DNA from: Euprymna scolopes
Taxonomy: Eukaryota
Length of the DNA stretch: 64,000 nucleotides
Direction: 5' to 3' (one strand)
NCBI GenBank assembly: GCA_053919585.1
Contig: CM132799.1
Positions 363 through 31,612 of this stretch are shown piece after piece (within the stretch, counting starts at the first letter, position 1; every line of letters starts with the position of its first letter). The position numbers and the translations under genes are program-made. Below the pieces are notes generated by a model. The model worked only from the letters and a program-made list of their open reading frames with translations. It made no database searches and was not told the DNA's origin.

Positions 363-469
363 GTGTGATAATAAGACGTCTTGTAGTGTTCAAGCCTCCA
401 ACGATTTATTTGAGGATCCGTGCGGCGGCACACCTAAATATCTTGAGATAATATATTGGTGCAATTATG
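363..469 (+). CDS. Coding exon: C-terminal half of SUEL/rhamnose-binding lectin (Gal_lectin) domain, variant A
   Basis: Pyrimidine tract + cacttag| acceptor; g|gtaaga donor; 107 nt, phase 2->1; encodes (R)CDNKTSCSVQASNDLFEDPCGGTPKYLEIIYWCNY with the SUEL DPCxGTxKYLxxxYxC motif. Confidence 0.88.
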
Positions 470-1230
470 GTAAGAGGACAAACTGTTCTGAGCACCTGCA
501 TGTCTGCCGTCATAATGTTTTTGATAACTTACCTGATCCCCAACCCCTTTATTTCCCCCTGCCCCCTGTTACCATTCTCTCCTACTCTCAAACTCCCTAA
601 ACCCAAAACCCCACCTTCAATAATTTTTACCTAATCCCATGCATATTGTGATCCATCATAAAGATATAACATCCAATAAAAGAAAACACACACAAAAAAT
701 GGTTACACGTTCTTTCTCCCTTTAGATATCACCAAGATATACTTCTGTTTGACCAGTATATATCTTATGAAATATTAACACCTTCATTAAATCTTAGTTT
801 AAAGATATATGGTTATTTATTTTCTATTTTGATATTAACTTACATAATAGCATTGTAATGGTCAGAGCAATAACTTATTGTCGTTGCTGATGTCTATAAG
901 GTTTTATAAAGATGCTAAGCACGGATGATGATGATGCTAAAATTCAACAGGGTAGAGATAGATTTATCACTAGCATTTGGAGTGGAGTAGAATCTATTCA
1001 ACAAAGACTCGCTGTAGGGGTTGTATTAAAAAAAAAATTTGTGAGTTCGTTCCCCAGTGACTCTGAAACAGCTAGGCCTATTTTTAAAAAATTTCACAAA
1101 AATGTACTTTATGTGCTTGGTAGTGTTCTTAGATAGATTTATCACTAACATTAGTAGCAGAGTATAAAAAGCAACTAGTAGAATGCAATAAACAAAGACT
1201 CCCTATGGAGTTTGTACTTAAAGAAATATA

Positions 1231-1943
1231 TCTATAATATAAAGCTGAACGTCTGTATGTGCCTGGTCACGAATAGGCTCCTATATGGTTGACTATTATA
1301 GAAAACTGATCACGTATAATGATAGATGTATCGAGACACAGGAATGGGTATTGTGGGGTCTGCGTACGCGCCTGGTCCACAAAGTATGGAAATAAATTTA
1401 AAAATTAAAAAAAAACGTTTACAAGTGTTTTTGATATAGATGTACATAATAATACTTTGATAAGTATGTTTTAACTTAAATAGGGATGGTATAATAAAAT
1501 TGTGGGGTCTGCGTTCGAGCCTTGCCTCTATAGAATGGAAATAGGCACAAACTTTAAAGACTTTTCGTATCTATCTGCGTAAGTATACTTTGATAATTAT
1601 GTTTCAGTTTGAAGAAATATGGTATAATAAAATTATGGGGTGTTCGTTCGCATCTGACCTCCATAGAATGTAAATATGTCACAAAGTTTAACAAGGCTTT
1701 TTAATATAGATCCACAGAATATTGTGATAAGTGTTTCAGTATGAACGGGTATGGTATAATAAATTATGGGGTTTATCTATTTTATTTTTACTTTCATCAT
1801 ATTTTGCTTTGGTTTTGATACCCCCAAATTCGAAGCTATCTCTTTACAACCCTTCCTGTTCATAACCTATCATACTTTCATAAATCAGAGTCCATTTTCT
1901 GTGGGCTGTTTTTGAACCCAATCAACGACGGGTACTTTTGCTA

Positions 1944-1944
<1 letters not shown>
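1231..1944 (+). mobile_element. Non-autonomous Helitron-like element with internal ~120-bp tandem subrepeats
   Basis: 5' TC(tataatataaag), 3' accc...gggt hairpin then CTAG, inserted between A and T; repeated ggtataataaaattrtgggg units; homologous copy at 5370-5830 (-). Confidence 0.65.
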
Positions 1945-1981
<37 letters not shown>

Positions 1982-2168
1982 GGATTAGAACAAGAGTCTA
2001 AAGAGCAGAGTATATTTTAATGTATTAGTACATTCATTAATACAATTAAAAGAAAAGTGCTTGTTGTAATGTAGATATATAATAAGCTTGATAGGAATAT
2101 ATCATAAAGCTATTTTAATATTAAGTAAGATGATTGATAATTTATAAGGAAGAACAAACAAAATCAAT

Positions 2169-2269
2169 AAATTGTACGATCGTTTCGGAAACTGTTTTTA
2201 TTGTGATAGACATTGAGTCTTGAACAATAATTTTATAGTTTTTTGAAACAGTTTCCTCATCAGCAATTT
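2169..2269 (-). ncRNA. Type I hammerhead ribozyme motif with extended stem II
   Basis: Minus strand: AAATTG-CTGATGA-GGAAACTGTTT[loop]AAACAGTTTCC-GAAA-CGATCG-TA-CAATTT; stem I 6 bp, stem II 11 bp, palindromic helix III, GUA cleavage triplet. Confidence 0.7.
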
Positions 2270-2427
2270 TTTTTTTTTTTTTTTTTTTTTAGACTATAAA
2301 CTACGTTTACCATCCAAATGAATGCATTGACTTTTAGAAGGGGAACCATTAAGATACATCTGCCTTACTTCAAAAATGCAAGGTTTATTTTTGGTGTCTT
2401 TAAAAAAAAAAAAAAAAAAAACTCGCC

Positions 2428-2543
2428 CAATATTTTTGCTGATGAGGAACTGTTTCAAAAAACTATATGATAAAATTATTGTCCAAGATTCGATGTCTAT
2501 CACAATAAAAACATTGTTTCCGAAACGATCGTACAATTTATTG
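2428..2543 (+). ncRNA. Type I hammerhead ribozyme motif (second arm)
   Basis: TTG-CTGATGA(2439-2445)-GGAAC...GTTTCC-GAAA(2522-2525)-CGATCG-TA-CAA; stems I and II imperfect. Confidence 0.6.
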
Positions 2544-2629
2544 ATTTTGTTTGTTCTTCCATATGAAACCGATTTTTAATTTTAATTATAAATTATCAAT
2601 CATCTTACTTATATATATGTGTGTGTGTG

Positions 2630-2668
<39 letters not shown>

Positions 2669-2672
2669 GTGT

Positions 2673-3019
2673 GTGTGATGGGACGATTTCAATGTTTTTC
2701 CAGATTCTGAATACAATTACGGATTCCAATTCTTTATAGATCTCTAAATATTTACCTTTAAAATTATTGTTCCTGAGTACTGTAAAAACAGTAAATGGGC
2801 AGATATTTTCTCAAAAATAAAAACACTTCTAGGGTGTGGGTTATCTATCGATTTTAGTTCTTATTGGTAGTTTAAAATCAATAAATATTTATTTTATTAT
2901 TACTACCGGCAGTGAAATATTGTTTTGAATAAAATCAAACAAAAAAGACTATTAAAGGAACCGTTTTTGGTATTGGAAAATAGACGAACACTTTTCCGAT
3001 TTTTACGATCCCAACACTA
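2673..3019 (+). mobile_element. hAT-like MITE (TIR TAGTGWTGGGACGAT family)
   Basis: Ends gtgatgggacgat ... cgatcccaacacta; internal similarity to 18426, 37647, 44017 copies. Confidence 0.75.
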
Positions 3020-3032
3020 TATATATATATAT

Positions 3033-3230
3033 GCAGGGTGATTGAAAAGTAACTATTTTAAAATACATACAATTTGTTTTTTGAAATTAATGAGAAGAGT
3101 ATAGTGTATGGACTTTTAAAATTCAATATAGACGCCATCATTTGCCACCAGCTTTTCAAGTCGTCCAGGAATCGCATCAACTGATTTCACAAACTCTTGC
3201 AGAATAGTATTTACCCTTGTGGAGGAGCTC
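3033..3230 (-). mobile_element. Tc1/mariner 3' end fragment
   Basis: cagggtg TIR-like start; minus strand reads ...VKSVDAIPGRLEKLVANDGVYIEF*, a typical mariner/maT transposase C-terminus. Confidence 0.6.
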
Positions 3231-3439
3231 CATCTTGCATAAAAATCAAATTTTCAATATTGTCTCAAGCACTAATAATTGGCTAAATTTCATCTCAACA
3301 TAGTGAACTACCTTTACACTTTGTCATTGTCTGTGATTGGCTGAATGCCTAATTCCCTGTAAGATGAATGGGTCGTCGGGTTTGCACGAATGGCTGGCCT
3401 GAATTCTCTGGGGTTGGCCGAAAGAGCAAGTCTACTCAG

Positions 3440-3590
3440 CCAAACCTAGAAATTTAGAAGAACGTGAAGGGCAATTCTTCTCCCTTTGTCAGAAACACTG
3501 CTCATGGAATGTGAGGACTAAAGGACAAAATAAGGGAAACGAGTTATCAGGTTGCTAAAATTAAGTCCAAACGTCCACTTTCTACTCTGC
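3440..3590. repeat. Dispersed repeat of unknown class (reverse-complement copies at ~26335-26480, ~52530-52620, ~55970-56060)
   Basis: Shared gcaattcttc...gtcagaaaca...catggaatgtgaggactaaagga core. Confidence 0.65.
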
Positions 3591-3596
3591 TAGATA

Positions 3597-4181
3597 CAGG
3601 GTGTCCCAAAAGAAGTTGATGGATTTTAAATGTGATTAACTTCCTCCATATTTAAGTTATGCTTACCAATTTTCATATATATATGTAGATGAGCCTCTCC
3701 GTGATTTTTTGAGATATAGTAAGATATCATAATCTACTTATTCTATTTTTAACTTAATCTAGGGTATGTTTTTCACAAGGTCTAATTTTAGTTATGAAAA
3801 ATGATGTTACTCAAATGTCCATTTTCATTTTCACATCTTGTGCTCTCTGCAGAACATTGTCCAGCACATCGCTTCATGTTTCAGGGCTTATGACCCTAAT
3901 TTTCTCCTTTATATTGTTTTTAAGGGCAGTTATCGTAGCTGGTGTTATTGCATTGGAATTTCTTGAAGTTTCGTCGTAATTCTTTGAGTTTCTGATATTG
4001 ACTCCTTCAACTGTAAATTTGACTTTACGATAAATATCCGCTCCTCGGTAGTGTAACGACTCATGATGACCTTTTGAAGGGTTACTCTAGATGATCTGAA
4101 AAAAATAAAAGAAAAATATAAAAAATTAAGAAAGTTGTGAATTTTTTTTTTTTAACCATCAGCTTCTTTTGGGACACCCTG
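3597..4181 (-). mobile_element. Tc1/mariner internally deleted element
   Basis: TIRs cagggtgtcccaaaagaagttgatgg / ccatcagcttcttttgggacaccctg, TA on both sides; degenerate transposase C-terminus on minus strand (~3790-3920). Confidence 0.85.
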
Positions 4182-4958
4182 TATAGAAACGAATGTCACC
4201 TTTTGGAAGTGTATTTATAATCGTTGTCGTTGACAGGATGGCATAATTTGAATTGGGAACAATTCATTAGAAAATGAATAAAATCGGATTTTTTTTTATC
4301 TTAGCAACATCAGATTAATCATTAATCTTTGTTAATCAGACGATCTTTTGTTTTTTATGCAATAAAAGGTGATAACGTAAAAGTGTTTAGCGTATTTAAG
4401 ATATAACGTGTTTAATTAAACCCTTGCCACTATTGGGCATGACCTGTGATTGCACAGAACGCCAGCCTCATATGCCATGAGTATTTGTTGCAGATAATGT
4501 CAAGTTAATCCACCGTGCATTTTGTATCCTCATGCAAAGAGTGTCTGTTGAATAGATTATGCATCACATATATTGCAACGATCGGCCTTCTGTGCTGAGC
4601 AGAACGCCGGTTTCGTTTATGTTGCATCACATTCATTGTTCAGGACATTAGCCTCGTGCGTGGCGTACACATGGCGTACACATGGCGTTATACATCTTTC
4701 CTATATGGTGTGATAGTCTTATATAATGTTCAGAACATTAGCCTCATGCACGATGCATCGTCTGAAATGCATTCAGCGTTTCTTTTTTTTTGTTTTTTCA
4801 TTAAGTTTTTATTTATTGCATCTGCAGGGTCTTAAAACCGTTATTAGTGCACATGATTCTTGCGGTTTTCTTTTTTGGAGGGGGATGTTATAACGTTTCA
4901 AGAATTTTGATAAAAGGCAAGTAAACTGTTTATGACGTGGAAATTTATTTTTTACTAG

Positions 4959-5097
4959 TGTTCTCATCTTTGTTTCGGCCGATGTAATCTCCAACCTTAT
5001 TTTATGCACATCTTGTTGAACTCAGAGATTCTAGAGCTTGACGAGATGCACTTGAATAAGCCTGGAGGTTACGTTGGCCGAAACGTTGTGAGAATAA
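4959..5097. repeat. Tail-out palindrome with degenerate hammerhead core (same family as 32811-32955)
   Basis: ttctca..gtttcggccgatgtaatctcca / tggaggttacgttggccgaaacgttgtgagaa arms. Confidence 0.65.
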
Positions 5098-5369
5098 TAC
5101 TCGAGCTGAGAACAGTGGTTTAAATAATTTTGACGATTGTCTATGGAGATGAAACGCGGACATCTGTTGTTTAATTTCCATAGTAATTTTCATAATTTAC
5201 TGTCCATAAAGTCCGTGTGCACATTAAAATATTTATAATTTTGTGTTTGCAATAGAAATAATCTATAAAAAGAATTCGCTTTTAAAACAATTCATTTTAA
5301 AATTACACACGAACTTTATAGACACCCTCTGTGTGTGTGTGTGTGTGACATATTTCCAATCTATGGAGG

Positions 5370-5818
5370 TATGGCACGAACGAACACCCCATAATTTTAT
5401 TATACCATATTTCTTCAAACTGAAACATAATTATCAAAGTATACTTACACAAATAGATATGAAAAGTCTTTATTAAAGTTTGTGCCTATTTCCATTCTAT
5501 AGAGGCCATGTGCGAACGTAGACTCCACAATTATACCATCCCTATTTAAGTTAAAACATAGTTATCAAAGTATTATGTACATCTATATCAAAAACACTTG
5601 TAAACGTTTTTTTTTTTTTTTTTAATTTTTTATTTCCATACTTTGTGGACCAGGCGCGTACGCAGACCCCACAATTTTAATGAATCATCATTATGCCAGA
5701 TCAAACATACCCATTCCTGTGTCTCGATACATCTTCTATCATTATACGTGATCAATTTTCTATAATAGTCAACCATATAGAGGCCTATTCGTGACCAGAG
5801 ACACACACAGACCTTCAG

Positions 5819-5830
<12 letters not shown>
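5370..5830 (-). mobile_element. Helitron-like element, 5' part (same family as 1231-1944)
   Basis: Reverse complement of ~1235-1650. Confidence 0.75.
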
Positions 5831-5860
<30 letters not shown>

Positions 5861-6768
5861 GGTGAAAAAAAAACTAAATAAATTATAATATTTATTAATT
5901 CATCAAATATTGTAATTTATTCAATTTTATTTTCATTTTCTATTTTTATTTTAAATTCTGTCTAGTATATGGATTTTTTTTTATCTTCATAGGTTCTAAT
6001 TTTAAGATTTATTTTTGTAATATATATATATATATATATAACCATCTAAAACCAGTATCTGTATACATTCTTTTTAAAGTATATGAAAAAAAATTAAAAT
6101 ATTTAAATTGGTTTTGCAGTGCTAAGCTGTTTCCTTAACAATCTAGTTATAATCATCTCTATTTCTATAAAAGTTGTTCATGTGTATGTTTTTATATTTC
6201 TATGTACACGAATAACTTCTAAACTAATTATGAATGATATACTAAACATGAGGGGTCGTAATGTAGGTTATATTTACTTTAGGTTTACTCAAAGAGTGAG
6301 GAGGGTGTCGTAGCCCTTTGTTAAAACTCGGTTATCTCATTCTTTTTTAGCAATAGATATTAGATATCAATTGATGAATATAAATACATTTGGATTCCTC
6401 CTCATAAGAATGTGGTTGGCTGGTTAGTCCATAAATATGGACTGGTAGAGCAGTCTAGGAGGAATGTAGAAAGATATATTAAGGATATTACTAGCTCTGT
6501 CCATGAACACTATACAGTAAGGCAACTTACTATATTACTCGAATATAGTAGCCAAGATCACTCTGCTACTTCAAACGAATATATCCCTTTCACAGGACAT
6601 ATCATTACCAACATTTCAGTTTCTTTGGGGTATTTTGAAGGGAGGAAGCATAACCTGGGAAACAATCTTTCTTTTCAAATATTTCAGATTTACATTAAGT
6701 TTTTTTCATAGTCACAAGATTTATTAAGCAAGAGTCCCTGAATATAAATTTCTGCTATAGTCAAGATT

Positions 6769-7039
6769 GGTCCTGGATATGACCTTAAACTATATCCGAT
6801 GGTGAGGCCCCAGCTTGCGGGTTTGGGGGAGTGTGGAGCCACCCTTTAATTGCCATTGCTCCCAGGTCCACTCTGACCCGGGGTGGTAGTACCTGTTAGT
6901 CCCAACTATGGGTTAAATAGAAACCGAATTGAAAAAAAACAAAAACAAATATATTCTATTAAAAAACTTTTCTTCAAAATTACTGGATGCTGCATTAAAT
7001 AACCTGATAAGGGTTGATATGCCGTAAAACAAAAACAAT
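6769..7039 (+). mobile_element. Pseudoknot-headed SINE-like element (family PK), short form
   Basis: Begins GGTCCTGGATATGACC; 13-bp TSD tatagtcaagatt (6756-6768 / 7040-7052). Confidence 0.9.
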
Positions 7040-7654
7040 TATAGTCAAGATTGTAACTTTCAGTTTCTGCTGGATAAGTGAACTAGAAAACCATTATTAA
7101 CTTGGGAAGAGGGGAGGAGGCATTCATATTAGCTGAAAGGAAGATAATCATTAATCAAAATAGACCCTATCTTGATTGTCACCATCGTCTCATCTGCTGA
7201 GCACAAACGAGTCAAAAAGAACAGGCAGTTTTAACCTAAATTTCTTCTAAAGACCTAAACCTTAAATTTTAGACATTCTCTAAAATCAGAATCATGTAAT
7301 AAATTTGGATCAAGATTAGAACAAGTATTCTAGGCATAAGTTTTAACCGATATATCTTGATTTTCATAAGAGGACACGGGGCTTTGTTGAGAGTGAAACG
7401 GTCACATTTGCAAGTGATTTCTTTTTTTCAAAATGGCGACTATAAATAGTAAAACGCTCACCTTTTGGCAATTGTGTTTCTTTCCCTGATAATTTTCTGA
7501 AGCTCATTACTTAATGGAAAATGTCTTTTCAACCTTTAATTTATTTAAACAAAAAAAAAAAACGATCAAAATCAAATTATTCAAACAAAGGTTTAATAGA
7601 ACAATGTACTCCTTTTTTTTTTTTAACAAAGGCGGTTAAAAAATACTTCTGAAG

Positions 7655-8820
7655 ACATTTGAATATTATACTTGTGGAAAAATATGAAGCACTTGATGAA
7701 ATCGACATTAATAAGCTATCTGTTCTTAATAGCATTTATGACACTGGAAAGATGCCCGCAGATATACTTAGTTCCACATTCACCACACTCCCCAAGAAAC
7801 CTGGAACAACCGACTGTGAATGTCACAGAACGATTAGCCTGATGAGCCATACATTGATTTTCCTAATGAAAATACTAATGAAGAGACTGTGAAAGAAAAC
7901 AAAAGTGAAATTTGGGTTTGTCACAAACAAGTGCCATATTCACGATGCCATGCTGACAGAAATTGTATAGAGGCAGAAAGACCCGTGTTTTATCAATTTT
8001 TCAAAAGCCTTTGATAAAGTAAACCATGAAGACCTATTCAAAATGCTAAATAAACGAGACGTTTATGGGAAAAACCTTAGAATTCTGAACAACCTCTATT
8101 GAAGACAAATGGCGACAGAATAGGTGGAGAACACAGTGAAGAAACCTTAATAAGAGGAGGAGTCCGTCAAGGGTTTTGTCACTAGATTTATTCAACCTCT
8201 ATGGCGAAAATGTACTGAGAGAAATTGAGGACATCAAAGGTATAAGTTTGGGTGTACACAACATTAATCATTTCTAAGGTATGCAGACGATACTGTTAAT
8301 AGCACAATGTGAAGAGACCCGCCAACGCATGCTGGGTACTGTAGTGGAAGCAAGTGAAAGTAAAGGTTTTGCTTTTAAACATCTCAGTAACGGTCAGCAT
8401 GACAGTATCCAAGAATACGCAAACTCCAACATGACGGCTACAATGTCACAATGTACCAATTAAACAAGTTGATATCTGGGCTACTAGATTATATCTGATG
8501 GAAGGTGCACTACCAAAATACAAACTTGCATAGCTGCAGCCAAAGTCGCCTACAAGAGATTGTCATCAATCAAGACCAATGGATACATTCACCAAATTCA
8601 AAATACTCCGAACATATGTATGGTCTGTTCTATTATATGGTTGTTGTGAGTGCTGGACAATCACCAACACCACAAGGAAAAGATTAGAGGCAACTGAAAC
8701 TTGGTTTGTGAGGAGAATTTTGAAGATATCCTGGACACAAAAGAAAACAAACCAGGAGGTATTCGAGTGGCAAACACAGAAAGGTCTCTAATAAGAACGG
8801 TACAAAAAAGACAACTGAGA
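7655..8820 (+). mobile_element. Degenerate RTE-clade LINE reverse transcriptase fragment
   Basis: TLPKKPGTTDCECHRTISLMSHT, FSKAFDKVNHE, GVRQG, YADD-like region, YVWSVLLYGCCECWT..RRILKISW; many frameshifts/stops. Confidence 0.9.
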
Positions 8821-9163
8821 TAAAATTTGGTGTTTATTTAGAATTACACTTATTTAAAAATAAATAAATAAAAAATAAGGAAGAAAAATCTTTGATGTAC
8901 ATAATCGTTAAGGAACGAAGATATATTCCAAAAATCATGTGGGTTTGGTTAGTAACTTTTCTATTTGGCTGTAAACAGAAACATTTAGTTGTCAAAGGTC
9001 AGCCAAAGATAAATTTGTTTGTAGAGCCCTGGGACATAAATATGGTGATAAAATATTCTGTTCAGGAATTTTACCCGTCCTGGGTATCATCAATATATTC
9101 TGCTCAGAAAGTTGTCTATGTACTGTTTTCTTAGAACTTAAAACCAGGAAACCTTTATTAAAT

Positions 9164-9199
<36 letters not shown>

Positions 9200-9559
9200 A
9201 TTAGGCAAAATGCATAACATAAAACATGAATGGCGTCATCAGAAAAAAGGTTCAATTACTTTATTTCATACAAACTTCTCCCCCTTTCTCAATAGCACTT
9301 TTTTTCTTTTTTTTTTAACCTCTTCTGCTAGATTGAAGCAGAATACCGTAAAGCTGTATTCAAATTCTATTGGTTTCCTCTCTTTGGCAGCCATCTTGTC
9401 TCCATCTATACTTTAGCAGCTGTGGAAAAAGGATTTCTGTAGGCCGGATTTTCCATGCATAACTATTAGTGGATCCGATACTCCTCGTCTGTGTACCTCC
9501 TTTCTAATTGGTTAATTGCTGTAAAGAAGAATGACCGTGTCACTTAATTGCTAACTTAA

Positions 9560-11210
9560 CACGGTCCTTGTCAAAATATAATCGACAAATCGAATTTTTA
9601 ATTATATCGTTTTTAGCAAAAGCAATATTATATACTTAATTGTCATGTCAGAAATAATATATCCTAAAATTATGAAAATTCATCAAGTAGAACAACTGCT
9701 AGTCAGTTTTTATTTAAAAAAAAAAAAAAAAAAAAAGTCTATCGCTATAGACAACAAATATTACATGCCATCGTTCCGAGTTATGTTCCCTGTGTGAACT
9801 CAACTGTCTACATTATAATGTCTAAGAAAGATTTTTTTTTTTTTTTTTTACACAGTGATCACCACTTATCAAGGCCCGGAAGCCACTCAGGGATAAGGGT
9901 TATTGCAAGTACATTACGTTAGTGTGGAGATTTGATGAAGTGTTTAATTAAGGGGGCGGTTCATTAGGAATTTGTTAACATTGGACTTGAAGACATCCAA
10001 GTTGTAGTCCGGAGGGAAGCAGGCAGACGGAACAGAGTTCCACAGGTGTGCAGTTCTAAGAAAGAAGCTTTGTTCATGGAATCCGCGTTTTGATTTAGGC
10101 ACAGATATAGTGGGGGAAATTTTTGACAGTGGATTCAGCTAGACGGGTGTTTTTCGTGAAAGATTGACGAGGGGGGACCAGAGATTGGAGTTCAGACGAG
10201 CACCTGCCATGGAAATAACGATAAAACAAGGATAGGCTCGCAACGTCTCTTCTGTGGGAGAGAGGTTGCAGGGTAGAGAAAAGGGCATCCCCCACTAAGC
10301 CACGAAGTCTATTTTGTACTCTGTCAAGGCAGGATAGGCTGTTTTTAGCAGCTCCTGCCCAGATATGGCAACAGTATTCCATCCTTGGACGTACTTGGCT
10401 TTTATATAGATAGAGAATTGCATCAGTAGTGAGATATCTTCTGGAGCGGTAGAAGGATCCCACCATCTTTCCAGCGACCTTGGCAACAGACTTGATGTAC
10501 GTGTTCCATTTCAGATCAGGAGTAAAGGTCAAACCCAGAAGCTTGTCAAAACACGGGGCCTCACCCAGCCGAGAGCCATCCATCACAATTGATGCCAGCT
10601 GGGGATCAGAGCGTTGATGATGTAAGGATAGGAGTTTGGTTTTGGATACATTAAAGGTAACCAGCCACATCTTCCCCCACTGAACCACAGGAGAGAGGAT
10701 CAAAGAGAACTTTGTCATTTACAGCCTTTGATGTGTTGCCGTAGATGGTCGTGTCATCAGCATAGATGTCAACGAATGATTTAAGTATGTGTTTAGGGAG
10801 GTCATTGATGTAGATCAGGAAGAGAGATGGGCCCAGGATTGACCCCTGAGGGACTCCAGCATTTATATTTCAGGCCTCCGATTTTTGTCCATCTACCACT
10901 ACTCTTATGAGCCTATCGGAGAGAAATGATTTAATGATTGAGAAAACATTTCCAGTTATACAGTAGCTGGAAATCTTGTGAAGTAGACCCTTATGCCATA
11001 CCTTTTTGAAGGCCTTTGATATGTCAAGAGCAATTGCCCTAGAAAGGAAGATGCAGTTTTACCCAATTTTCCATACTTTTAACTATAAATAGCTTTGTAT
11101 TCGATGAATTTTAGTCATTTTTGGATATATTACTATTTTCGGGATGACAATTGAGTACATAAAATGATATTTTAAAAAATCGATCCGTCAACTATATTAA
11201 CAAGCACCGA
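9560..11210. mobile_element. MITE-like TIR element hosting the CR1 insertion; partial direct duplicate at ~11380-11655
   Basis: Ends cacggtccttgtcaaaatata / tatattaacaagcaccg; the sequence interrupted at 9830/11041 is contiguous in the 11470-11510 copy. Confidence 0.5.
9832..11041 (-). mobile_element. 5'-truncated CR1-like LINE (RT domain, C-terminus, 3' UTR, poly(A))
   Basis: Minus strand: [31 protein letters not shown] 10095-10718 (LYLYKSQVRPRMEYCCHIWAG, LSHRRDVASLSLFYRYFHG); T-run 9832-9849; agaaag on both flanks. Confidence 0.92.
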
Positions 11211-11689
11211 CACAACAGTAGTAGTAGTAGTAGTAGTAGTGTATTGACAAGTGTATAATCCCGACATACATGCTCATTGTTTGAACCAGGCGTGTCGTCC
11301 TTGCCCTCGATCAACACGGGCTCTCTTTAAAATGGAGGTTGTGTTTTAGTAAATAAAAAAAAAAATAAATAATAATAATAATCGATCACTATAGACAATA
11401 AATATGGCAACCATGAACAGGTTATGTTTCAGAGCTATTTCCCTTGCGTGTACATTCTTATTGTCTACTTTATAACGTCTAAGAAAAAATGCGATTTTAC
11501 CCAATTTTCCATAAAAATTAGTTTTAATTATAAATGACTTCTTACTCGATTCTATTTACTATTTTTGGTATGACAATTAAGTATGTAATATTGTTTTTGG
11601 TTAAAACGACATATTTAAAAAAAAATCAGATGTTGACTGTATCTTAACAAGCACCCTTAACAATATCGAGTAGATAGCCTCTCTAAATA

Positions 11690-11800
11690 TGCTATAATCC
11701 CATTGACTAATATATACCCATTAACCCTTATCCTCGAGTGGCCTCCGGGCCTTGATAAGTGGGGACTCCTTGGTAAGTGGGGACTCCTTGGTAAAAAAAA
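11690..11800 (+). mobile_element. CR1-like 3' tail fragment with duplicated terminal 18-mer
   Basis: ttaacccttatcctcgagtggcc...ccttgataagtggggactccttgg, terminal unit x2, then A-run. Confidence 0.8.
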
Positions 11801-11952
11801 ATAAAAAAGGATCTGCAGAATTTTCGTTGTGGAATACACCAACTTAGAAGTTCAACTAACTAATTTCTCAAACTTGTTTAGCATATAAATACTGAATATT
11901 ATTCACTGTGCTAATATATCTGGTTATTTTCTGTTATTGATAATTTATAGCA

Positions 11953-12180
11953 CTAGCAGGGAGACCCGACATTGCCTGGGGTCGAATAAGGATCAACGAA
12001 TGTTTCACCCTCTGATATTTTATTGTCATCAAAATCGGTGAAATCGCACATTATTCAATCGAATCTGTTGGTTGCATGCTCTAGTTTGGAACCAACCGTG
12101 GTGGAAGCAGGAGGAAGCTTCACATGCCTACCCGCAGCGACTTTGTCCACAATACATTGTCTATATTGCACTGTAGTGAA
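11953..12180 (-). mobile_element. Helitron-like 3' part (family of 15293-15951)
   Basis: actagcagggagaccc end; ~12075-12175 matches reverse complement of ~15743-15840. Confidence 0.6.
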
Positions 12181-16356: not shown

Positions 16357-17521
16357 TACCGGGTGAAACGATAAAATTGTGGCCCTAGAAAAGACGGCAG
16401 GATTCCATTTCCGTTTGATTAAAAAATCGGTTTTCTATTTTTGCTATTCCATGAAAAAAGCTTCTTTCTAAGAACTGCACACCTGTGGACCTCTCTTCCG
16501 TTTACCTGCTTTCCAGCTGACTTCAAGTCCAATGTAAACAAGTACCTGATGAGCCGTTCCCCTTAAGTAATCCAATTTACCAAATTTACACTACTAACGA
16601 TTACTATATTGTCCTTTTGACCACTGTACACTCTTTAACTCTTATCCTCGAGTGTCTTCTGGGCCTTGATAAGTGATGATACCTTTGTAAAAAAAAAAAA
16701 AAAAATAAATAAATAAAAATAAAAAAAATAAAGACCATCTAGTAGTTGGCCAGTTGTGTATAAATCCCGAGAGCAATAGGAGCCTTCTATCATGTCTGAA
16801 AGTGACACAATGTTCAACGAGCGAGATCGGAGATGTGCTGCTGTACAACTCATGCTCTTTACTGATCCAAGTTATAACAGGACCATTGCCAGCACCCTCA
16901 AAATGCATTGTTCGATTGCCACGAATAACAGGGATGTGCTCAGGGTGGTCCAAGTAAAGTTTACGGCCACGGTTATGGTCTTTGGTGTGGTTTTAAGTGA
17001 GTCACATCATGCCACCTCACATCTTCGAAGTCGGCTTGAAAGTCAACACCAAAGTGCACCTGAATGTACTAGAGTGTGGTGCAATCAGGTGCCTGCTGAC
17101 AGACCCTGGGTGTGGCAGCAGGGCCCTGCACCAGCCCACAAGTCCAAAGAGACCCAGGCTTAGCTTCAGAAGGAGTGCTATGACTTTGTACCCTTCTTTC
17201 ACTGGCCTCCATTCTCCCTTGACCTGAACCCACTGAACTATTTCGTTTGGTCAAACATCAAAAACATCACCAACTTGACCTCCCACAGCACCAAAGCCAG
17301 CCTGATCGCTACCATCCGCCGAGTATTCGCCGAGCTCCCAGCAGTGGCTATGGAAAAGGCATGTTCTCAGTTCAGGACCCGTATCGAGGCGGTGATTGAG
17401 GCTGAAGATGTCTACATTGATTCAACTACATAATCAAGTTACCTGAATTGATATTTTCAATAAGTTTTAAAATAAAGCTGTATTGTTTCTTTTAGGGCGA
17501 CAACTTTATCGTTCCATAGTA
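16357..17521 (+). mobile_element. Tc1/mariner (maT-like) transposon remnant with transposase pseudogene; CR1 3' fragment nested at ~16440-16715
   Basis: TIRs aacgataaaattgtggcccta / tagggcgacaactttatcgtt; frameshifted VMVFGVV, WVWQQGPAPAHKSK, WPPFSPDLNPLNYFVWS motifs. Confidence 0.9.
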
Positions 17522-20287: not shown

Positions 20288-20335
<48 letters not shown>

Positions 20336-22702: not shown

Positions 22703-22742
<40 letters not shown>

Positions 22743-22995
22743 AAGGTTTTCAAAATAAGCATGGCAAGTGGAATGTTTAGGATAGTAGGCATGTAATTTC
22801 TATGGACATCTTATTGTCTAAATCCATTTTTTCAATGCATTTCTCTGTTTCCTTCATGCGGCCTAAATCCAGATTCTTTCATATTTTGCATTGAAATTTC
22901 TTTATGTATAATGCACGGCATAAGAAGTCTACATTTTTTTTTTATATTTAAAAACAAGAACAATCTTTATCTTGCAGTTAAAGTAATTTTAATCT

Positions 22996-23035
<40 letters not shown>

Positions 23036-23087
23036 CTCCTCCAAATGTTTGCATAAGTAAATAGGTTATAAAATGTTTTCTTTTTTT

Positions 23088-23561
23088 TAAGAGGCGGCGA
23101 ACTTTAAATTGAGACAAATCACAGAAAAATGTTTTTATTATACAAATATGTGGTTTATTCCAATGATTAATTTTCGCTTTTCTAATTTTGATACAATTTC
23201 AAGCACCTGGCTCTATCTAAAGACACAATTTTCAGTGTACGCATTAGATTAGGCTGCATTTCAACAATACTGCATCAAGTGTCTTAAGTGGTCTTGTGTG
23301 TCCGGTTTATCAGCATAAACATGGGACTGTACATATCCCCAAAGAAAATAATCTAATGGGGTTAAATTACACAAGGTGTTTATTTCGTGAAATTATTCGT
23401 TAGGCATCAAATGTTTCTCTCGTGAAGTTGATTGTATCATTTGCAATTTACAAACGGTGCTCAAGATGAATTGGCAAACCAAACTGAACTTTAAATTACC
23501 GATAGTTGCCAAATCTGCAATTAAAGAAAATAGTTGTCAATTTAAAAGTTTACTGTCTCTA
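23088..23561 (-). mobile_element. Tc1/mariner deletion derivative (second copy 38853-39353)
   Basis: Minus strand NLTPLDYFLWG at ~23337-23368; inverted termini aactttaaattgag / tcaatttaaaagttt. Confidence 0.7.
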
Positions 23562-23789
23562 AAAAATCCAAAAAATCACACCTTGTGGAATTTTTAAGAG
23601 AATATGTAAGACATGAAACAAACAAGAAGTTGGTATCAAAAAGTTATATCAGTGTACTAGTTAACCATATCCAAGTATATACTTATCGGTAATGTACTAG
23701 TTTCAGAGCTGTGGTGGGCATGATCTTGAACCTGGATTGAGCAATAAAAGTAGTCTAGATTTGCTTCAACTCTGCCATGAGCATCTGTC

Positions 23790-24350
23790 ATTGACTGGTG
23801 CGAACTTTGAAAATCAAATCATGAGTTTCTAGTAAGGAGTCACTCTCGATTTATGGGAATCAAAACTGCAGGTGATTGTACAACAACAGCAAGTTTATCT
23901 GATGTGATCCTGTCTCTGCTCTATCATTATTTTCATGGCAAGTACTCGTCTGAGCTCCAATCTATAGTCTCCCCTTGCAAAACATTCACAAACAAAAAAC
24001 CTCACTAGATTAGCTACAACCATTATCAATAATTTCCCCCGACTCTCTGTGCCTAAATTTAAACAGATCCCATCAACAAAACTTCTTTCCTAGAACTGCC
24101 AATCTGTGGAACACTGTTTCACTGGCCTGCTTCCTGGATGATTACAATATGGTAGTCTTCAAGTCCAATATAAACAGGTTCTTATTTAGCTGTCCCCTTA
24201 AATAACCCAAATTCTACCTAATCTACACTATTAACGATCACTAAACTAATGAATTCCAATTAAATATATACTGCACTACCACCTTACATTGATTAACCCT
24301 TATCTGCGAGTGGCCTTTGGGCCTTGATAAGTGGTGGATCCCTTGTAAAA
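23790..24350 (+). mobile_element. CR1-like 3' fragment
   Basis: Homologous to the 3' part of 9832-11041; ends gagtggcctttgggccttgataagtggtggatcccttgtaaaa. Confidence 0.8.
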
Positions 24351-24675
24351 GAAAATAAGGATGCAGCAAATTGTTTCCATTGGTTGAACAGAATAAACCG
24401 AAATTCTTAATGTTTGAAATCTCTTGGCTTATAAAGAAAAGTGAGAAAAATAAATCTAGTGATTTGTGAACAACGTTTTGATTTTTTAACCAAGGAAACA
24501 AATTTATCATTATCTTGATTTTAATCCATTAAAGTTGAGTCCCGTTGAAGCCAGAGTGGAAACTGTTTTTATGGAGTTTCAAATCCCCCTTTCAAAAGAA
24601 TTATTTGAAGCAAAATGGTTTTGACATTATTCCCAAAGCCACTTATTCTTTTACTTAAAATCAGATTTTAATTTA

Positions 24676-24708
<33 letters not shown>

Positions 24709-27040
24709 CATTCTTTATAAAACTATAGAAACTCTTGCAGACAACTATGACTGTTTCTCTTTGCGTAAACTTTTGAAATGTATTTTTTATTATATAAAAC
24801 CATTCTGGAAGAAAAAAAAAAAAAGACTAAAGAAATTTTTGTTTATAATATTGTAGTAATAAAACTATTCTGAAAAGAAGCATTTCAAAGTAAAGACTAT
24901 TTTTTTCATGTAAAACATTAAAGTTAGACTAGAATTATGTAAGTATTAATCAGAAGAGATTTTTCATCAGTACAGACCCTCAAGATATGGCAAGACTTCC
25001 GCTCAGCATAAAGCAGATGTCAAAAAAAGAAACGAGTTTATTTCACATGACAAAATAACCATAGCAAATTGAATGGCATACAGGTGAATGAAAACTTACT
25101 ATGTTGAAAATATCAAGGACTTTTCACAAGATGCCAAGACGAAAATCAGGCTTTTTTTTTTTTTTTTTCAACAAAACGATTTAAATAGGTCAAATGTTTT
25201 CGTATTAACAAATAGAGCACGCATGTTGACAAAAGGAAACCTGATTAATACATGACATTTATTGATAGTTTGTTGGAATGTGTTAGAAGCGCCAACTGAA
25301 CATTAAAGGCAGGTTAAAAAGACATGTAAACACACAAAGAAATTCTACAAGGAAAAATGAATCCTAAGAAATACAATGTTACACGACAATACAAAAAAAT
25401 TCACAAGTTAATAGAAAAAAAGAAATAAGTGTAAATAAATGAGAACATAGTTATTTTTAACGGTTGAGACACACCAGAGAAAATACAATCATTTGATTGT
25501 GTAACCATTGTCAGAGAGCTGGTTGACATGATCAGAAAATAAACCTGAATTTGAAAATAATACCTAATAGCAAAGCAGGTCGGACAACATTTACCCAGTT
25601 TGAATGTCACACTAATAAGAGGCGGTGCGATCTTAATATATATATATTTTTTTATTTATTTACTGCCATTTTAAGAATTAAAGAATCAAATCTTATGACA
25701 GTTGCACCATCTTAAGTTAAAGCCAAATATCTCCAAAAGGAGATAACTCTGGTCTCAACAGAGCCATAATAGACAAATATTCTTCAGTTCTATTATTTTA
25801 AAGGGAGATTGATTCGTATTGTAACATCACAATAGTAAATGAATGTCATCTACTTAAGAAAAAGAAAAGCCCAAACCCACCCCCATCCTTCCCAAAATCT
25901 ATTCAGTCCTTTAAATGTAAAGAAAAACTTATTTCATATTTTTGAAACCTGAACTTTCGCAATTTGTTTCAGAGCAAGAAATAAGGATGTTAAATGTTTG
26001 TAAGATGTATCATTTTGATCAGCCCGAGAGCATACATTGAATTGTTGACTGTTCATCCATTCGACTGATTGGTAATCTTGCAATATAGTTAACATAAGGT
26101 TAAAAAAAAAAACAAAAAAACTTCAGATACAACAAAACCTTATATCAAATACAATAGAATTTCATTTACTATTGACCTATATATTTTTAATGTGCTGAAT
26201 TTTTTTTTAGGGGGGGGGGGCCTTTGTTTCAAAATTTGTTTTACACTGTATCATCAGGCTAAAAGTTTGAGATATCAAAATTTATAGTGAAATAAAAAAA
26301 AAATTTACATAGTTTCATAACATTAAAAGAGTATAGAACTGAGAGTAGAAAGTGGACTTTGTCTACTTTTGGCAACCTCATAAGTCTCACTTCCCTTATT
26401 TCATCCTTTCTTACATTCCATGAGTGATGTTTCTGACATGGAGGAAGAATTGCTGTTTTCCGGGTCAGAATATAACCATCTAATACTTACTGTTTAGTTT
26501 TTTTTTTACCTTGATGTGGTATTATGTGATAAAAAATATTTTTTTATTTTTAAGCTCTTTGCAGTAAGTGACTTCATGCATTGTCTGGGATTATTTCTAT
26601 AACAAAAAATACAGCTCTGTATAAAATTAAATTTTAATGCATTTCGTTAAAGTTATTGTAAATTTTTTTTCCTATTTCTCAATCGATAGCTATAAGATCT
26701 CAAGGCAGAAGGAAAAATGTTGGCGGCCATGTTTGGATTTTTATTGGATCTGAAAATAGAGATACATCTTATTTTGAAATTTAAAAAAAGAAAATAAATT
26801 TTAAGACCGTTTCAGAATGTTAAAAGTATACAGGTCAGGAGAAAATTAAATTTTGTGTTTGGTTAAAGTTATAATTTTTTTATTAAATGTTTCTTTGCTA
26901 ACTATACTGCAAAATTACTGACTGATCATATTCAAAATTTCTTAATCATAAGTCCTAAATGAGAATCAGTTTTAGGAAAGTACTATTTTTTTTTTTTTTT
27001 TTTTTTTTTTAACGGTATCACCTTTAAAACTTTTTTCAAA

Positions 27041-27289
27041 TTATATACATTACGTAAGATTAGAAAAGCATTGGTTTAAAATACAAACAAAAGGGACCCA
27101 TATCTAGTTGTCTGTTGGACTCTCTTCAGTCTCTGTTTATGTCTCCCTAGAAACGACACCATTTCCAGGCAGCCAAATACAAAGAGGCTGAAGAGAGACT
27201 GACAGAGGCGACCAGATATCAGTTCCTTTTAATTGGATTTAAAACCGATGAAATTAATGTTTTTCTGATCTTCTGTAATGCATATATAA
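27041..27289. repeat. Imperfect palindrome with outward-reading CTGAAGA motifs
   Basis: Arms cattacgtaagattagaaaagcatt..tctcttcagtctct / agaggctgaagaga..tgtttttctgatcttctgtaatg. Confidence 0.6.
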
Positions 27290-27356
27290 ATATTACTCAT
27301 TTCTAAAATCTAACTCGAACGCACTACTAGAGTTCTCTCCCACTTATATACGCGTT

Positions 27357-27408
<52 letters not shown>

Positions 27409-27534
27409 TGCAGTATTCCTACTTCATCTGTTTCTCAAATGACCAATTGTAACCGTCTTCCACATTCGATCATTTTCTTGTTTCCACACTGATTCTAAAT
27501 TTTATGGATACACTAAAACATTTGTTAAACCTTA

Positions 27535-27568
<34 letters not shown>

Positions 27569-29319
27569 GCATCTGATTATTTCCCCTTTTAATTAGTCTG
27601 AAATATACATTGTATTTTTTAGATGAACAGAACGTTTCATGTACAAAAAAAAAAAGCATTGTTTTTCTTTCTTTTTTTCAAATTGACTCTATTGAATTAT
27701 TGGAATGTGATATTGCATGATACTTTTGTATCATTTTCCAAATCTGTGCCTTGGCAAGTAATGTAATGGATCTGCTCTCTAAAAATTTGTAGAACGTTCA
27801 AGATAGACTTTTTTTTCTTGTCTCGTTATCAAAACATTTTCTCCATAACCCCTGTAAACCCGATACCAGCTTTTCAAGCAACACTCCCTCCTTACAAATT
27901 GATGCATATACCAAAGTAAAAAAAGAAAAAAAAATTGCAAATATAAATTTTACTGAATTGTATCACATTGTGACTATTTGCTTGGACAATTCCTTCCTCC
28001 TTTCAATTCTTTCTTTGCCGTTCCTAGTATGAAAAACAAATTAGTATTTTTCTTTCTGTGTAGCCCTCCTTACATGTTATGAATTTTTCTTTTTTTTCCT
28101 TTATAACATAATGTAGTCCGTACCTGATTTTCCAAGTCAGACCCGAATAGAAATCCATCTGACATATCGATACTTAATTCAGACTAGCCTATTTTTCGTT
28201 TTCCACTGTTATTGCCATCAGTATTTATTTTTATCAGTTTTTTTTTTCTGAAAATGATTGTTTCAACTAAGAAAATTTTTAGAATAGATGCATTTTCCCT
28301 TACTCATCGAATCTTTTTAAACATTGAAAGGGAAGTAATTGCGTAATGAGTAGAAGAACCACATCACTCTACATAAAAAAAAAAACATAAGATATCAATG
28401 GATATATACCTGAGAATCCAAACAAGGAAAGGAATATGCCGTTGTCATAGCCCTAGTAATGAGTTATTGCCCTTAACTTCTGCAAACAAAATGTCTAAAA
28501 ACACTTGGTTTTTAAACAGTAAAGGAAGTTTCCATGTTAATTACACGATTTGTTCTTTACTTTTAAATGTCGTATACTAAAACAAACTTTTTAACAAATT
28601 CCAGTTGTACAAAATAATTTGATTAATAAATAAGTCACCAAAACTAATGTTTCTTTCAATAAAAAGTATTTTTTTATAAACTGGGTAGGTACAGCTAGTT
28701 TATAAAATATTTTCTTTTTAAATCTGATTTTTTTTTTTTTTTTTTTTTAATAAATCTGATTTAAAATTTTTTTTTTTTTTTAATAAAAAAAAAAATTTAA
28801 GTAAATTTAACTCCAATAAGAGAAATAATGAGATCTAAATCTGTAAAATCCAGTATAAAAAATAGAAATTCAAATATTTCGTTGAGAAAATTGCAATAAT
28901 TACTTACCTCAGAGATCCATGTGTGTGTCTGCATTTTGTAAAGTCCAGTTAATAAAAAAACAAAAAAAAAAAACAACAAAATGGCGACACAGTTGATTTT
29001 ATCCTCGATGGTCACATTAAATTATCACCATTCATTTGCAAATTAGATGATTCTGAGCTTTATAAAAGCAAGCCGTTTGAAGAACGAGAGAATTTGTTTA
29101 AAGAAGACAAGCCGTGCATAGATACCACATTGAGGCATAACAGATTATTTACTTGAGTCAACAGAGAATTGAAATTACAAAGAAGAAACTACAGTTATTC
29201 ATTGCTGAAGAAAATCACATGTTTCAGTGATTTTCTTTGTTTTGTTTTTTCTACGTCCAAATGGAACTTTAAAAATATTTGAAGTATATCATAATTTGAA
29301 ATGATTTTTATAATATAAT

Positions 29320-29493
29320 GACTAGGGCTATGACAACAGAACGATTCTTTTGACTCTCAAGTATATATCCGACACAGTAATACAGTCAATCAACCGAGAA
29401 CCACACCAGTCTATTTAAAAACATAGTATATTAACGGATATATACTAAAGAGTCGAAACAACGAAAAGAATATGCTGTTGTCACATCCCTAGT
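29320..29493. mobile_element. Palindromic MITE-like family (TIR ctagggctatgacaacagc); other copies ~48846-49018 and partial ~28350-28458
   Basis: Inverted termini and shared internal gagaaccacatcactctacataaaaacataagatatcaatggatata. Confidence 0.7.
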
Positions 29494-29609
29494 GATGATT
29501 CACAAAAATCTATTTAATAAAAACAAAGCTAAAGAATAAGAATATAAGAGACAACATTAAACATTGACACTGGTTCCTACCATTCTTCCGTATCTCTCAC
29601 ACATGCCAT

Positions 29610-29842
29610 CTTGAGAGATGATGGATAACCCTTGTAAGGGCTGTTGCAGGTGGAATTGTGAAGCAAGGGTTGTGCAATCTCCAATGGCATATCTCTTGAG
29701 TTGTCACTGCTTGATTCCAGTGGCAAGAAGAAATCCAGGACAACTGGAAAGATTCCCAAGTTGTCACCCATTTTAATACTGCCCAGGCTCAACATTGCTT
29801 AACCTCAGTGATCTAATGGGAACTGGTGTATTAACTCGATTG

Positions 29843-29846
<4 letters not shown>
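29610..29846 (-). mobile_element. 5S rRNA-derived SINE (SINE3-type), internally deleted
   Basis: Minus strand: acaccagttcccattagatcactgaggttaagcaatgttgagcctgggcagtattaaaatgggtgac, followed by the same body as the 36861 and 45821 copies. Confidence 0.8.
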
Positions 29847-29889
<43 letters not shown>

Positions 29890-31272
29890 ATTACTTTATT
29901 TAATCACGTAAATTAATATCATTTAATCACATAAATTAATATACAAGGATATAATTTTATGCCTGAATTTTTCAGTATTTACTTCAACAGTGCTCAATAC
30001 ATAGAGCTAGGTAGTCAACTTGACGAATTCTCACAAGAATGAAATGCGGAATATTCTGTGTAGCTTAATTACCATATATACTTTCATAATTTACTATATA
30101 CACACACCCTTAATTAAACCTTAAACATAGACTCAAATTATTTGTCTGGTCCATGAGCGAAAGCAGGAGTTTGAGTTCTTTAATTATCCCAGGCAACACC
30201 TTCAAGGCACAGCTTCTGCTAGTCTATATTTCTATTAATCTCTCATTTTTGTTGGAAACTACTCTGCTGATCTGGTTGAAATTTTGTATGGGCACTTACA
30301 TGGTGCAGCAAACTAAGTATTATGGCATCCATTCGATGTACAGTTAATGTTCAACCATCAATTTGGCATAAAGCACTCGGTCTACGTCAATGGGCTATAA
30401 CTTTTACCAGCTTTTAACGGACTAAAAAGTTATGTATATTAGGATTAGCTATATAAAATATGCACGTCTGAAAAGAACACATTCATCTAAATCTGGTTTC
30501 ATTCATAACCTTGATTTCACAAGTTATAAATTTTTGCACCCAACACTTAGTATTCTCAAATGCTCACCAGTTTTTCTACTGACCAAGCTCAACATAACTT
30601 TAGTGATCTATCTAGTAATGTTTAAAGGTTGCGGTCAAGAGAAGAATGCTAGAAAAATTCTGTATCTTGACAAAAAAAAAAATGGTTTTCTTTTCTTTTT
30701 GTTAAATGTTATTAATCATTTTTAGTTAGAAACTGGCAGAAGCACCCGGTTGTAAAATATGCTTGAATATATTTTAATTTATGCAGATTTCATATCATTA
30801 TAAAGCCAGTTTTATATTGGTTATTATATTGTATCCAATATATAAGTGGTTAAAAAGTTTAAAAAAAAGAAAAAGACTTGAGTGCCATCAGCTAGAATCG
30901 AAACTGAAACAGAAACTTATGAATAATTCTTAATAAAATTATTTATTTCACGATTCAAGCAAGCAAGAATGCCAGGACCGTTCGCAGTTTTATAATTAAG
31001 ATTTTAGTTTCGTTTTTAGATAAACACACCATCAGGTCAAATTCAGTGACCATTTTGTTTTTCTATAGTTTATTCACACGGTTTTCTCAATGTTACATGC
31101 ATCATAATAAATGGATATTAAATGGAAATGATTTAATATATCACAGAAATAACATTAAAACCATTTTAAATGCCTATACAGAAGTTTTTTTTCACATTCT
31201 TCTGACTGACCTTTAAGCATTACGTTAACGGGAACCGACGTGTCAATGATTATGATGTATCATTATCTGTAA

Positions 31273-31313
<41 letters not shown>

Positions 31314-31502
31314 GCCCACCCACCCCTTACCCAACCCACACCCTTTCCGATAACGTATTCTTACCTGCTAAAAGGTAAGTATATTAGAATAGTCTTTGAG
31401 AGTAGAAGAGCATGTGACGTACTTCTTGCCTTGGCCGACAGTATTGCATCCCCGAATGATAATGATGATTACTAATGGCATGCTAACTACTACTACACTT
31501 AG

Positions 31503-31612
31503 GTGCGATGGGCGAGTCACTTGTAACATCGCTGCGGAAAATGATGTGTTTGGAGCTGACCCATGTCCTAGCACTTACAAGTACCTGGACGTGCATTACA
31601 TTTGTGAGAAAG
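31503..31612 (+). CDS. Coding exon: C-terminal half of SUEL/rhamnose-binding lectin domain, variant B
   Basis: tgctaac branch-point-like motif (31481-31487), cacttag| acceptor, aag|gtaggt donor; 110 nt, phase 2->1; (R)CDGRVTCNIAAENDVFGADPCPSTYKYLDVHYICEK. Confidence 0.9.

Follow-up and report, generated by a model that had tools for sequence, protein, structure and literature searches.

The 64,000-nucleotide (nt) stretch of the Euprymna scolopes genome analyzed here (contig CM132799.1 of assembly GCA_053919585.1, hereafter called the window) covers part of a latrophilin gene, which encodes an adhesion G protein-coupled receptor (GPCR). It contains two homologous exons, A and B, each encoding the second half of a SUEL lectin domain, and the next constitutive exon, D, with which an immunoglobulin (Ig) domain begins. 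An earlier reading of the sequence alone (the sequence-only reading) had described A and B as homologous exons of identical phase and identical acceptor context that specify only the second half of the domain, and had proposed that they are spliced in a mutually exclusive manner. The positions, borders, and phases of the exons, which bear out this description, are collected in Table 1. Both exons open with one codon-completing base and close with one spare base, both donors are good GT sites, and the Ig exon is in frame behind either of them. In their similar length (107 and 110 nt) and identical phase, A and B have the properties by which homologous exons of a mutually exclusive pair are recognized.

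Table 1. Exons and introns of the latrophilin gene located in the window
Feature	Position	Strand	Length	Phase	Borders or content
Intron 3' end ahead of exon A	1-362	+			20-nt tandem array at 1-242; pyrimidine tract reaching cacttag
Exon A	363-469	+	107 nt, 35 codons	2 to 1	cacttag/GTGTGAT...AATTATG/gtaaga
A-B intron	470-31502	+	31 kb		repeats and open reading frame fragments; no mRNA-matching segment
Exon B	31503-31612	+	110 nt, 36 codons	2 to 1	cacttag/GTGCGAT...GAGAAAG/gtaggt
B-to-Ig-exon intron	31613-61153	+	29.5 kb
Exon D, next constitutive exon	61154-61234	+	81 nt	1 to 1	start of Ig domain, DRTQTVPKSQ...

The assignment of the two exons to the lectin domain was examined with Pfam and with a custom profile. 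The Pfam family SUEL_Lectin (PF02140) matched the peptides of exon A (E value 7.4e-10, 39.5 bits) and exon B (E value 1.2e-10, 42.1 bits) above its gathering cut-off of 31.4 bits, in both cases over positions 47-80 of the 80 profile positions only. Of 35 residues, 16 are identical in the two peptides, among them the four cysteines and the DPC and KYL motifs, and DPC..KYL motifs occur nowhere else in the six frames of the window. The custom SUEL profile, comprising 563 domains, was run with filters off on 3,586 six-frame pieces of the window; A (48 bits) and B (57 bits) were the sole significant matches, followed by a next-best match with an E value of 0.022. The latter, located at 45534-45611 (QCDGEKECSITCEKHVF; QCDGEKEC..VF), was considered as a third copy of the exon and rejected, as it lacks DPC and KYL, is followed by a stop codon, and has no AG acceptor; moreover, the alignment of its DNA with exon B does not exceed chance (p 0.14), which marks it as either a chance match or a fully decayed relic. 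The introns flanking A and those flanking B do not align beyond the seven acceptor bases cacttag, which points to an old duplication.

The gene is a cephalopod orthologue of the latrophilins, i.e., of the ADGRL-type adhesion GPCRs. A phmmer search with the exon B peptide in a database of 1.84 billion representative proteins yielded, among many multidomain lectins, two matches of 100% identity, P0045 and P0052. The latter protein (1,309 residues) has one SUEL stretch, its residues 82-117 correspond to exon B, and its 90% cluster includes ADGRL1 of Acanthosepion (Sepia) pharaonis, the relevant segment of which is likewise 100% identical to exon B. A second protein cluster (P0183, P0190, and P0194) agrees letter for letter with the Ig exon of the window. 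P0190, which originates from E. scolopes, features the domains SUEL_Lectin (residues 49-131, E value 9.8e-19), I-set (137-225), GAIN (401-605, E value 6e-30), GPS (681-724, E value 4.3e-18), and 7tm_2 (739-973, E value 4.8e-68), as well as an HRM candidate (333-386) whose 23.2 bits fall below the cut-off of 26.2 bits. It is 90.8% identical to ADGRL1 of A. pharaonis, whose gene spans 151 kb, and 55% identical to ADGRL2 of Octopus sinensis. The closest named relatives are ADGRL1 of A. pharaonis, ADGRL2 isoforms of O. sinensis, O. bimaculoides, and Argonauta, and ADGRL2/3-like proteins of scallop and Physella. In the cephalopod protein an Ig domain stands at the place of the olfactomedin domain, which is absent; a rhamnose-binding lectin (RBL) domain is always present in latrophilins, and domains such as olfactomedin were lost outside chordates (PMC2430599). 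Note that P0045, a 95-residue entry, is the translation of an unspliced RNA read-through around exon B. Together with P0160, a corresponding translation of unspliced pre-mRNA around the first-half exon, it carries intron-derived residues on both sides; the two entries are evidence for intron retention and misleading as proteins.

Four mRNA contigs of E. scolopes, i.e., the transcript contigs L001, L002, and L003, which cover the full coding sequence, and the long contig L004, match the window at 100% in two places only, namely exons B and D, and all four contain B without A. In these mRNAs, B is preceded by an exon, here termed U, and followed by D. Exon U ends with ...GTTCGACAAAG (...CAAAG) and specifies the first lectin half, which extends from FTCEG via RANYGR to VVRQR and contains the first four cysteines; the U-B junction is read directly in L001-L004. 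The mRNAs thereby show the single first-half exon that had been expected upstream, outside the window. Within the window, a search of all six frames for the motif A.YGR and a phase-aware exon scan revealed no first-half SUEL exon, tblastn with the true first half gave zero matches, and the 563-domain profile gave no match to positions 1-53 with an E value below 5. The absence of a first-half exon between A and B, which the sequence-only reading had noted by eye, was thus confirmed by motif scan, tblastn, and the six-frame profile search. As the first half is not encoded in the window, the first-half exon must be located upstream of base 1, and exon A lies inside the intron preceding B.

This arrangement removes the reading of A and B as second halves that belong to two SUEL domains in tandem. 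Tandem domains are usual in free lectins, as seen for the top matches of the exon B search with 2-16 SUEL stretches, and a whole domain of phase 1-1 could in principle be duplicated in tandem. However, not only is a first-half exon missing between A and B, but all latrophilin orthologues examined possess a single SUEL domain, and the mRNAs skip A. A variant of this explanation regards A as a decaying duplicate that is spliced as noise; against it stand a strong coding constraint and the recovery of A with exact splice borders and at a depth of approximately 57 in two studies, both described below. In either form, we consider this explanation highly unlikely.

The consequences of the possible exon combinations for the reading frame were determined with splice forms assembled by script from L001. 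The form with B only and the form with A only have open frames of 1,326 and 1,325 residues, respectively. The form containing A and B suffers the frameshift that had been predicted for direct A-to-B splicing and reaches a stop at residue 187, and the form lacking both exons ends at residue 109, likewise with a stop. An early stop thus results whether the two exons are included together or skipped together, presumably followed by nonsense-mediated decay (NMD). The coding constraint on A was evaluated with 3,000 copies of B that were mutated at as many sites as separate B from A, using the genome base composition. On the SUEL profile, exon A obtains 48.8 bits; the neutral copies reached 10.4 bits at most, none of the 3,000 attained the score of A, and 87% had gained stop codons. 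A comparison of A with B gives a pN value of 0.40 and saturation at synonymous sites. Since A outscores every neutral copy, it has evolved as a translated SUEL half-domain.

Transcription of exon A was assessed by aligning RNA contigs to positions 243-2100 of the window; four runs, each from a different study, were used. In run X9 (oligo-dT RNA, study P4), a 3,085-nt contig with a depth of 57.5 matches positions 361-469 only, with 0 mismatches; the match covers record positions 663-771, with A starting at base 665. In run X4 (poly(A) RNA, study P2), a 163-nt contig with a depth of 57 matches the same positions only, likewise with 0 mismatches (record positions 26-134). For both contigs, the match to the genome begins two bases ahead of the predicted acceptor and ends precisely at the predicted donor, and the two extra matching bases at 361-362 (AG) are also the final two bases of exon U. 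Exon A is therefore spliced into RNA at both borders in two independent RNA studies. A low-depth contig of run X6 (406-574) crosses the donor of exon A, as unspliced RNA or DNA would.

The dimensions of the shorter contig provide information on the neighbors of A. Logan contigs are built from a 31-mer graph, and k-mer enumeration on the real sequences showed that a branch of A versus B comprises 27 + 107 + 29 = 163 nt, which is exactly the length of the X4 contig, whereas 166 nt are predicted for a branch of A versus the exon-skipping path. Specifically, such a branch extends 30 bases beyond the first and the last differing base; A and B share GTG at their start, resulting in an upstream flank of 27 nt, and only the final G at their end, resulting in a downstream flank of 29 nt; the X4 contig has 25 + 2 nt upstream of A and 29 nt downstream. 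Its length and flanks indicate that the upstream exon is shared by A and B and that the downstream partner is shared as well. The AG bases and the 27-nt flank, by their fit, are indirect support for an upstream exon common to A and B. Consistently, 664 nt precede A in the X9 contig, and 635-749 nt precede B in L001-L003, where B starts at base 636 (L002), 718 (L003), or 750 (L001); the similar 5' length fits the same latrophilin mRNA. Neither transcripts with A and B both in frame nor an origin of the exons from separate genes, two outcomes raised in the sequence-only reading, were encountered: the form with both exons is out of frame, the four mRNA contigs contain B without A, exon A resides in the intron before B, and the RNA contigs leave A at both of its splice sites.

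These data also argue against the placement of exon A in another, nested transcription unit, for instance that of a small, secreted SUEL lectin or of a short isoform of latrophilin with an A-specific terminal exon. An upstream flank of 27 rather than 30 nt and the junction bases AG fit sharing of the exon that precedes B, and the X4 contig ends 29 nt past A, as expected for a shared downstream partner, whereas an A-specific exon would give no branch. In addition, the window contains no first-half or other SUEL piece, and the sequence that precedes A in the X9 contig, 664 nt in length, is consistent with the 5' region of latrophilin. A nested unit appears extremely improbable to us.

Several observations weigh against exclusive use of A and B. 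The length of 163 nt and the 29-nt downstream flank fit the exon order U-A-B-D as well as U-A-D, since exons U and B both end with AAAG. The ends of the X9 contig project to L001 position 3173 or 3063, neither of which corresponds to a known branch caused by a single-nucleotide polymorphism or an isoform, so that U-A-D and U-A-B-D are not sorted by it. The RNA contigs show the presence of A, not proportions. At the protein level, all isoforms annotated for O. sinensis, O. bimaculoides, Argonauta, and A. pharaonis are of the B type. No protein with A occurs in the clusters around P0183 and P0052 or in those of the octopus and Argonauta proteins, and the cluster members of the Sepia, octopus, and Argonauta proteins all carry B. 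Word searches for A-bearing proteins, with A plus its flanking open reading frame (33-105 residues), the N-terminus plus A (72-227 residues), or the N-terminal region of the full protein (720-2290 residues) as queries, found none; lengths of 228-719 residues lie outside the searched ranges.

Part of these observations is what would be expected if exon A served as a frameshifting "poison" cassette, which in U-A-B-D transcripts would introduce the stop at residue 187, trigger NMD, and lower latrophilin output. The junction behind A would then read AATTATG/GTGCGATGGG. The 27 nt upstream, the 29 nt downstream, and the total of 163 nt fit this explanation equally, as does the absence of an A-only protein from the protein collections in the searched length ranges. 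The protein sequence of such a cassette is not needed, yet A keeps the four cysteines, DPC, and KYL, displays exactly the phases of B, and has a profile score that was not reached by any neutral copy. Furthermore, the 3,085-nt X9 contig runs unbranched through A, which would mean that nearly all latrophilin transcripts of that sample were unproductive. As A is translatable only when it replaces B and is under coding constraint, an exclusive pair is favored over a poison cassette, and we regard the cassette as unlikely.

Overall, we consider it likely that A and B constitute a mutually exclusive exon pair of the latrophilin gene, and the analysis thus supports the corresponding interpretation of the sequence-only reading. 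From the reading frame and the coding constraint on A, we infer that A joins the Ig exon directly in place of B. One upstream exon, which encodes the first lectin half and ends with ...GTTCGACAAAG, would be spliced to either B or A and then to the Ig exon at 61154-61234. The junctions of the A form would accordingly read ...GTTCGACAAAG/GTGTGAT and AATTATG/ATCGTACACAAACGG. The two resulting receptor forms would share the first lectin half and differ in the pocket, and exclusivity would be enforced at least by the reading frame.

With respect to related species, the latrophilins of octopus, Argonauta, scallop, and Physella contain a CDGR-type segment that is identical to B at 18-26 of 36 residues, whereas exon A is identical to these segments at only 13-18 of 35 residues. 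According to this comparison, the B type is the ancestral form, and either the duplication is very old or A has evolved fast. The putative A isoform is missing from current cephalopod annotations.

The possible effect of the exchange on the lectin domain can be judged by comparison with the RBL domain of mouse latrophilin-1. Its sugar pocket is formed chiefly by loop 2 (C115-P-G117-T118-Y119-K120), where the sugar is contacted by the N atom of Gly117 and by N and N-zeta of Lys120, while Thr118 and Tyr119 line the pocket for the methyl group of rhamnose and Glu42 and Tyr63 of the first half contribute; substitutions of E42 and K120 abolish binding, and rhamnose, bound with only millimolar affinity, is a questionable endogenous ligand (PMC2430599). 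The structural match of the cephalopod lectin domain is 2jx9 (E value 1.4e-16). Its first half, common to both forms, keeps CE (Glu after Cys1) as well as Tyr and Arg of ANYGR, and the swapped 35-36 residues comprise loop 2 and the final strand together with the remaining four cysteines. The loop-2 sequence is C-G-G-T-P-K for A and C-P-S-T-Y-K for B. The loop-2 lysine (of KYL) and the threonine are kept in both exons, whereas an equivalent of Gly117 is found in A only and an equivalent of Tyr119 in B only. Exon A also carries an NKT N-glycosylation sequon near its start, which is missing in B. Based on these residues, the two receptor forms probably have different binding pockets, and their ligand or glycan specificity may differ.

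In suggesting two alternative ligand-binding surfaces, the sequence-only reading had referred both to the sugar-contacting loop and to the binding of teneurin by the lectin domain of latrophilins. The first part stands, as the loop of the sugar pocket belongs to the half that is exchanged (PMC2430599). The second has to be restricted, as the teneurin hot spots published for vertebrate lectin domains are located in the constant first half, both in Lphn2 (D55, D68, and D73, with Lec comprising 30-137; PMC6978801) and in LPHN3 (S38, R44, D49, and D67; PMC7195488). The swap would therefore more probably affect the side of the pocket than the surface known to contact teneurin. Teneurin binding by invertebrate latrophilins is itself a matter of debate, as the title of one publication indicates (PMC6422961).

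A regulated, perhaps tissue-specific switch, by which the constant teneurin-facing half would be combined with two different loop-2 pockets and one additional N-glycan, is conceivable, and we put it forward tentatively; the choice between A and B might then differ between tissues. The one long contig with A comes from run X9, which is filed as a host-associated "metagenome" transcriptome; the other mRNA assemblies carry B. If such a switch exists, the long-questioned carbohydrate pocket of latrophilins would have a selected function. The endogenous role of the RBL sugar pocket is an open question, and a second pocket-forming half that is both selected and spliced argues that this surface matters.

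The sequences surrounding the exons were inspected for features that could be related to splicing. The tandem array at the beginning of the window has, according to Tandem Repeats Finder, a period of 20 and 12.1 copies of a T-rich/C-rich unit (T10 C4 TTTCTG-like). The pyrimidine fraction of the 362 nt that precede A is 0.88, compared with 0.53 ahead of B and 0.50 ahead of the Ig exon. About 200 nt upstream of B, at 31273-31313, there is a (CA)n microsatellite with approximately 20 repeats. The pyrimidine tract and the (CA)n repeat may be sites for splicing repressors or enhancers, but serve as a lead only, microsatellites being common in the genome. The introns next to the three exons were also compared, over approximately 1 kb, for RNA pairing of the docking or selector type; the longest runs of intron-intron complementarity comprise 9-14 nt, which is no better than in shuffled sequences.

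Other parts of the window contain repetitive sequences. About 0.8 kb downstream of A, positions 1235-1990 correspond to a very abundant repeat with a summed contig depth of 1e5-1e6 in all four RNA runs and with many internal deletion joints (e.g., 1351 to 1495). This repeat probably belongs to a family resembling short interspersed nuclear elements (SINE-like) or retrozymes. The longest open reading frames of the A-B intron, at 10095-10718 (minus strand, 207 residues) and 16792-17163 (plus strand, 123 residues), appear by eye to be transposon remnants; neither has a Pfam match at an E value of 0.01. A run of N is present at 62507-62702.

Further variants of the latrophilin transcripts and proteins were observed outside the lectin domain. 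In an exon outside the window, L004 (encoding P0192) differs at positions 2027-2030 from L001 (2614-2617) by two A-to-G changes, which are three bases apart and affect first codon positions. They convert the GPS cleavage site from HL/TS, as present in L001-L003, to HL/AG (Thr719Ala and Ser720Gly). From its sequence, this pattern is compatible either with A-to-I RNA editing, a frequent process in cephalopods, or with a rare allele; if genuine, the change would remove the threonine needed for autoproteolysis of the GAIN domain. L004 additionally lacks 12 nt (FISK). In the third intracellular loop, a 26-residue insert (NGHLSTSSDLALCGSQSK.SYLADIP, replacing one Lys) represents an alternative form common to A. 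pharaonis and both octopus species, as determined by comparing P0157, P0184, and P0196 with P0052, P0198, and P0197. An eight-residue micro-insert, VRDTLKSD, is variable in octopus, and the last approximately 20 residues differ between P0183 and P0190.

Mutually exclusive exons and splicing of the latrophilin ectodomain were already known (PMC6629964, PMC13108381, PMC6978801). In open-access text, no paper or annotation was found that describes alternative halves of the lectin domain itself. The two forms represent a natural variant pair, i.e., two lectin domains differing in 35 residues, with which the binding of glycans, teneurin, Toll-like proteins, or other partners can be compared. They are also a further example of diversification by exon duplication, here of one half of a non-Ig binding domain that belongs to a neural adhesion receptor.

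Closest in logic to the exon pair described here are the IIIb and IIIc exons of the receptor tyrosine kinase FGFR2, which are mutually exclusive, encode the C-terminal half of an Ig domain, and change the ligand-contact surface. In FGFR2, and probably in the present gene, a constant first half of an extracellular binding domain is followed by one of two homologous exons for the second half. However, the FGFR2 exons encode half an Ig domain and are close together, whereas A and B encode half a SUEL/RBL domain in an adhesion GPCR and lie 31 kb apart. Half-Ig exons of Dscam1 are likewise homologous duplicates of equal phase, one of which is used at a time; such clusters are compact, and in some of them the exon is selected by RNA pairing. 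A and B share with them the equal phase and the homology, but are far apart, with no intron complementarity above chance within approximately 1 kb. The vertebrate latrophilins ADGRL1-3 belong to the same family and are also spliced in the N-terminal adhesion region, where splicing tunes ligand binding. Specifically, a mini-exon in the Lec-Olf linker sets the teneurin affinity (PMC6978801), neurons and endothelium differ in exon 9 of Adgrl2, located at the lectin domain (PMC13108381), and mutually exclusive events of Lphn2/3 have been drawn elsewhere in the gene (PMC6629964). While the vertebrate events concern cassette or linker exons or alternative splice sites, in the cephalopod gene half of the lectin fold including loop 2 would be replaced. 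With the RBL domain of mouse latrophilin-1 (PDB 2JX9/2JXA; PMC2430599), the cephalopod domain shares the fold family, the first-half Glu, Tyr and Arg of the ANYGR motif, and the loop-2 Lys and Thr; compared with the mouse loop 2, C-P-G-T-Y-K, B has Ser in place of Gly117, whereas A has Gly in place of Pro116 and Pro in place of Tyr119.

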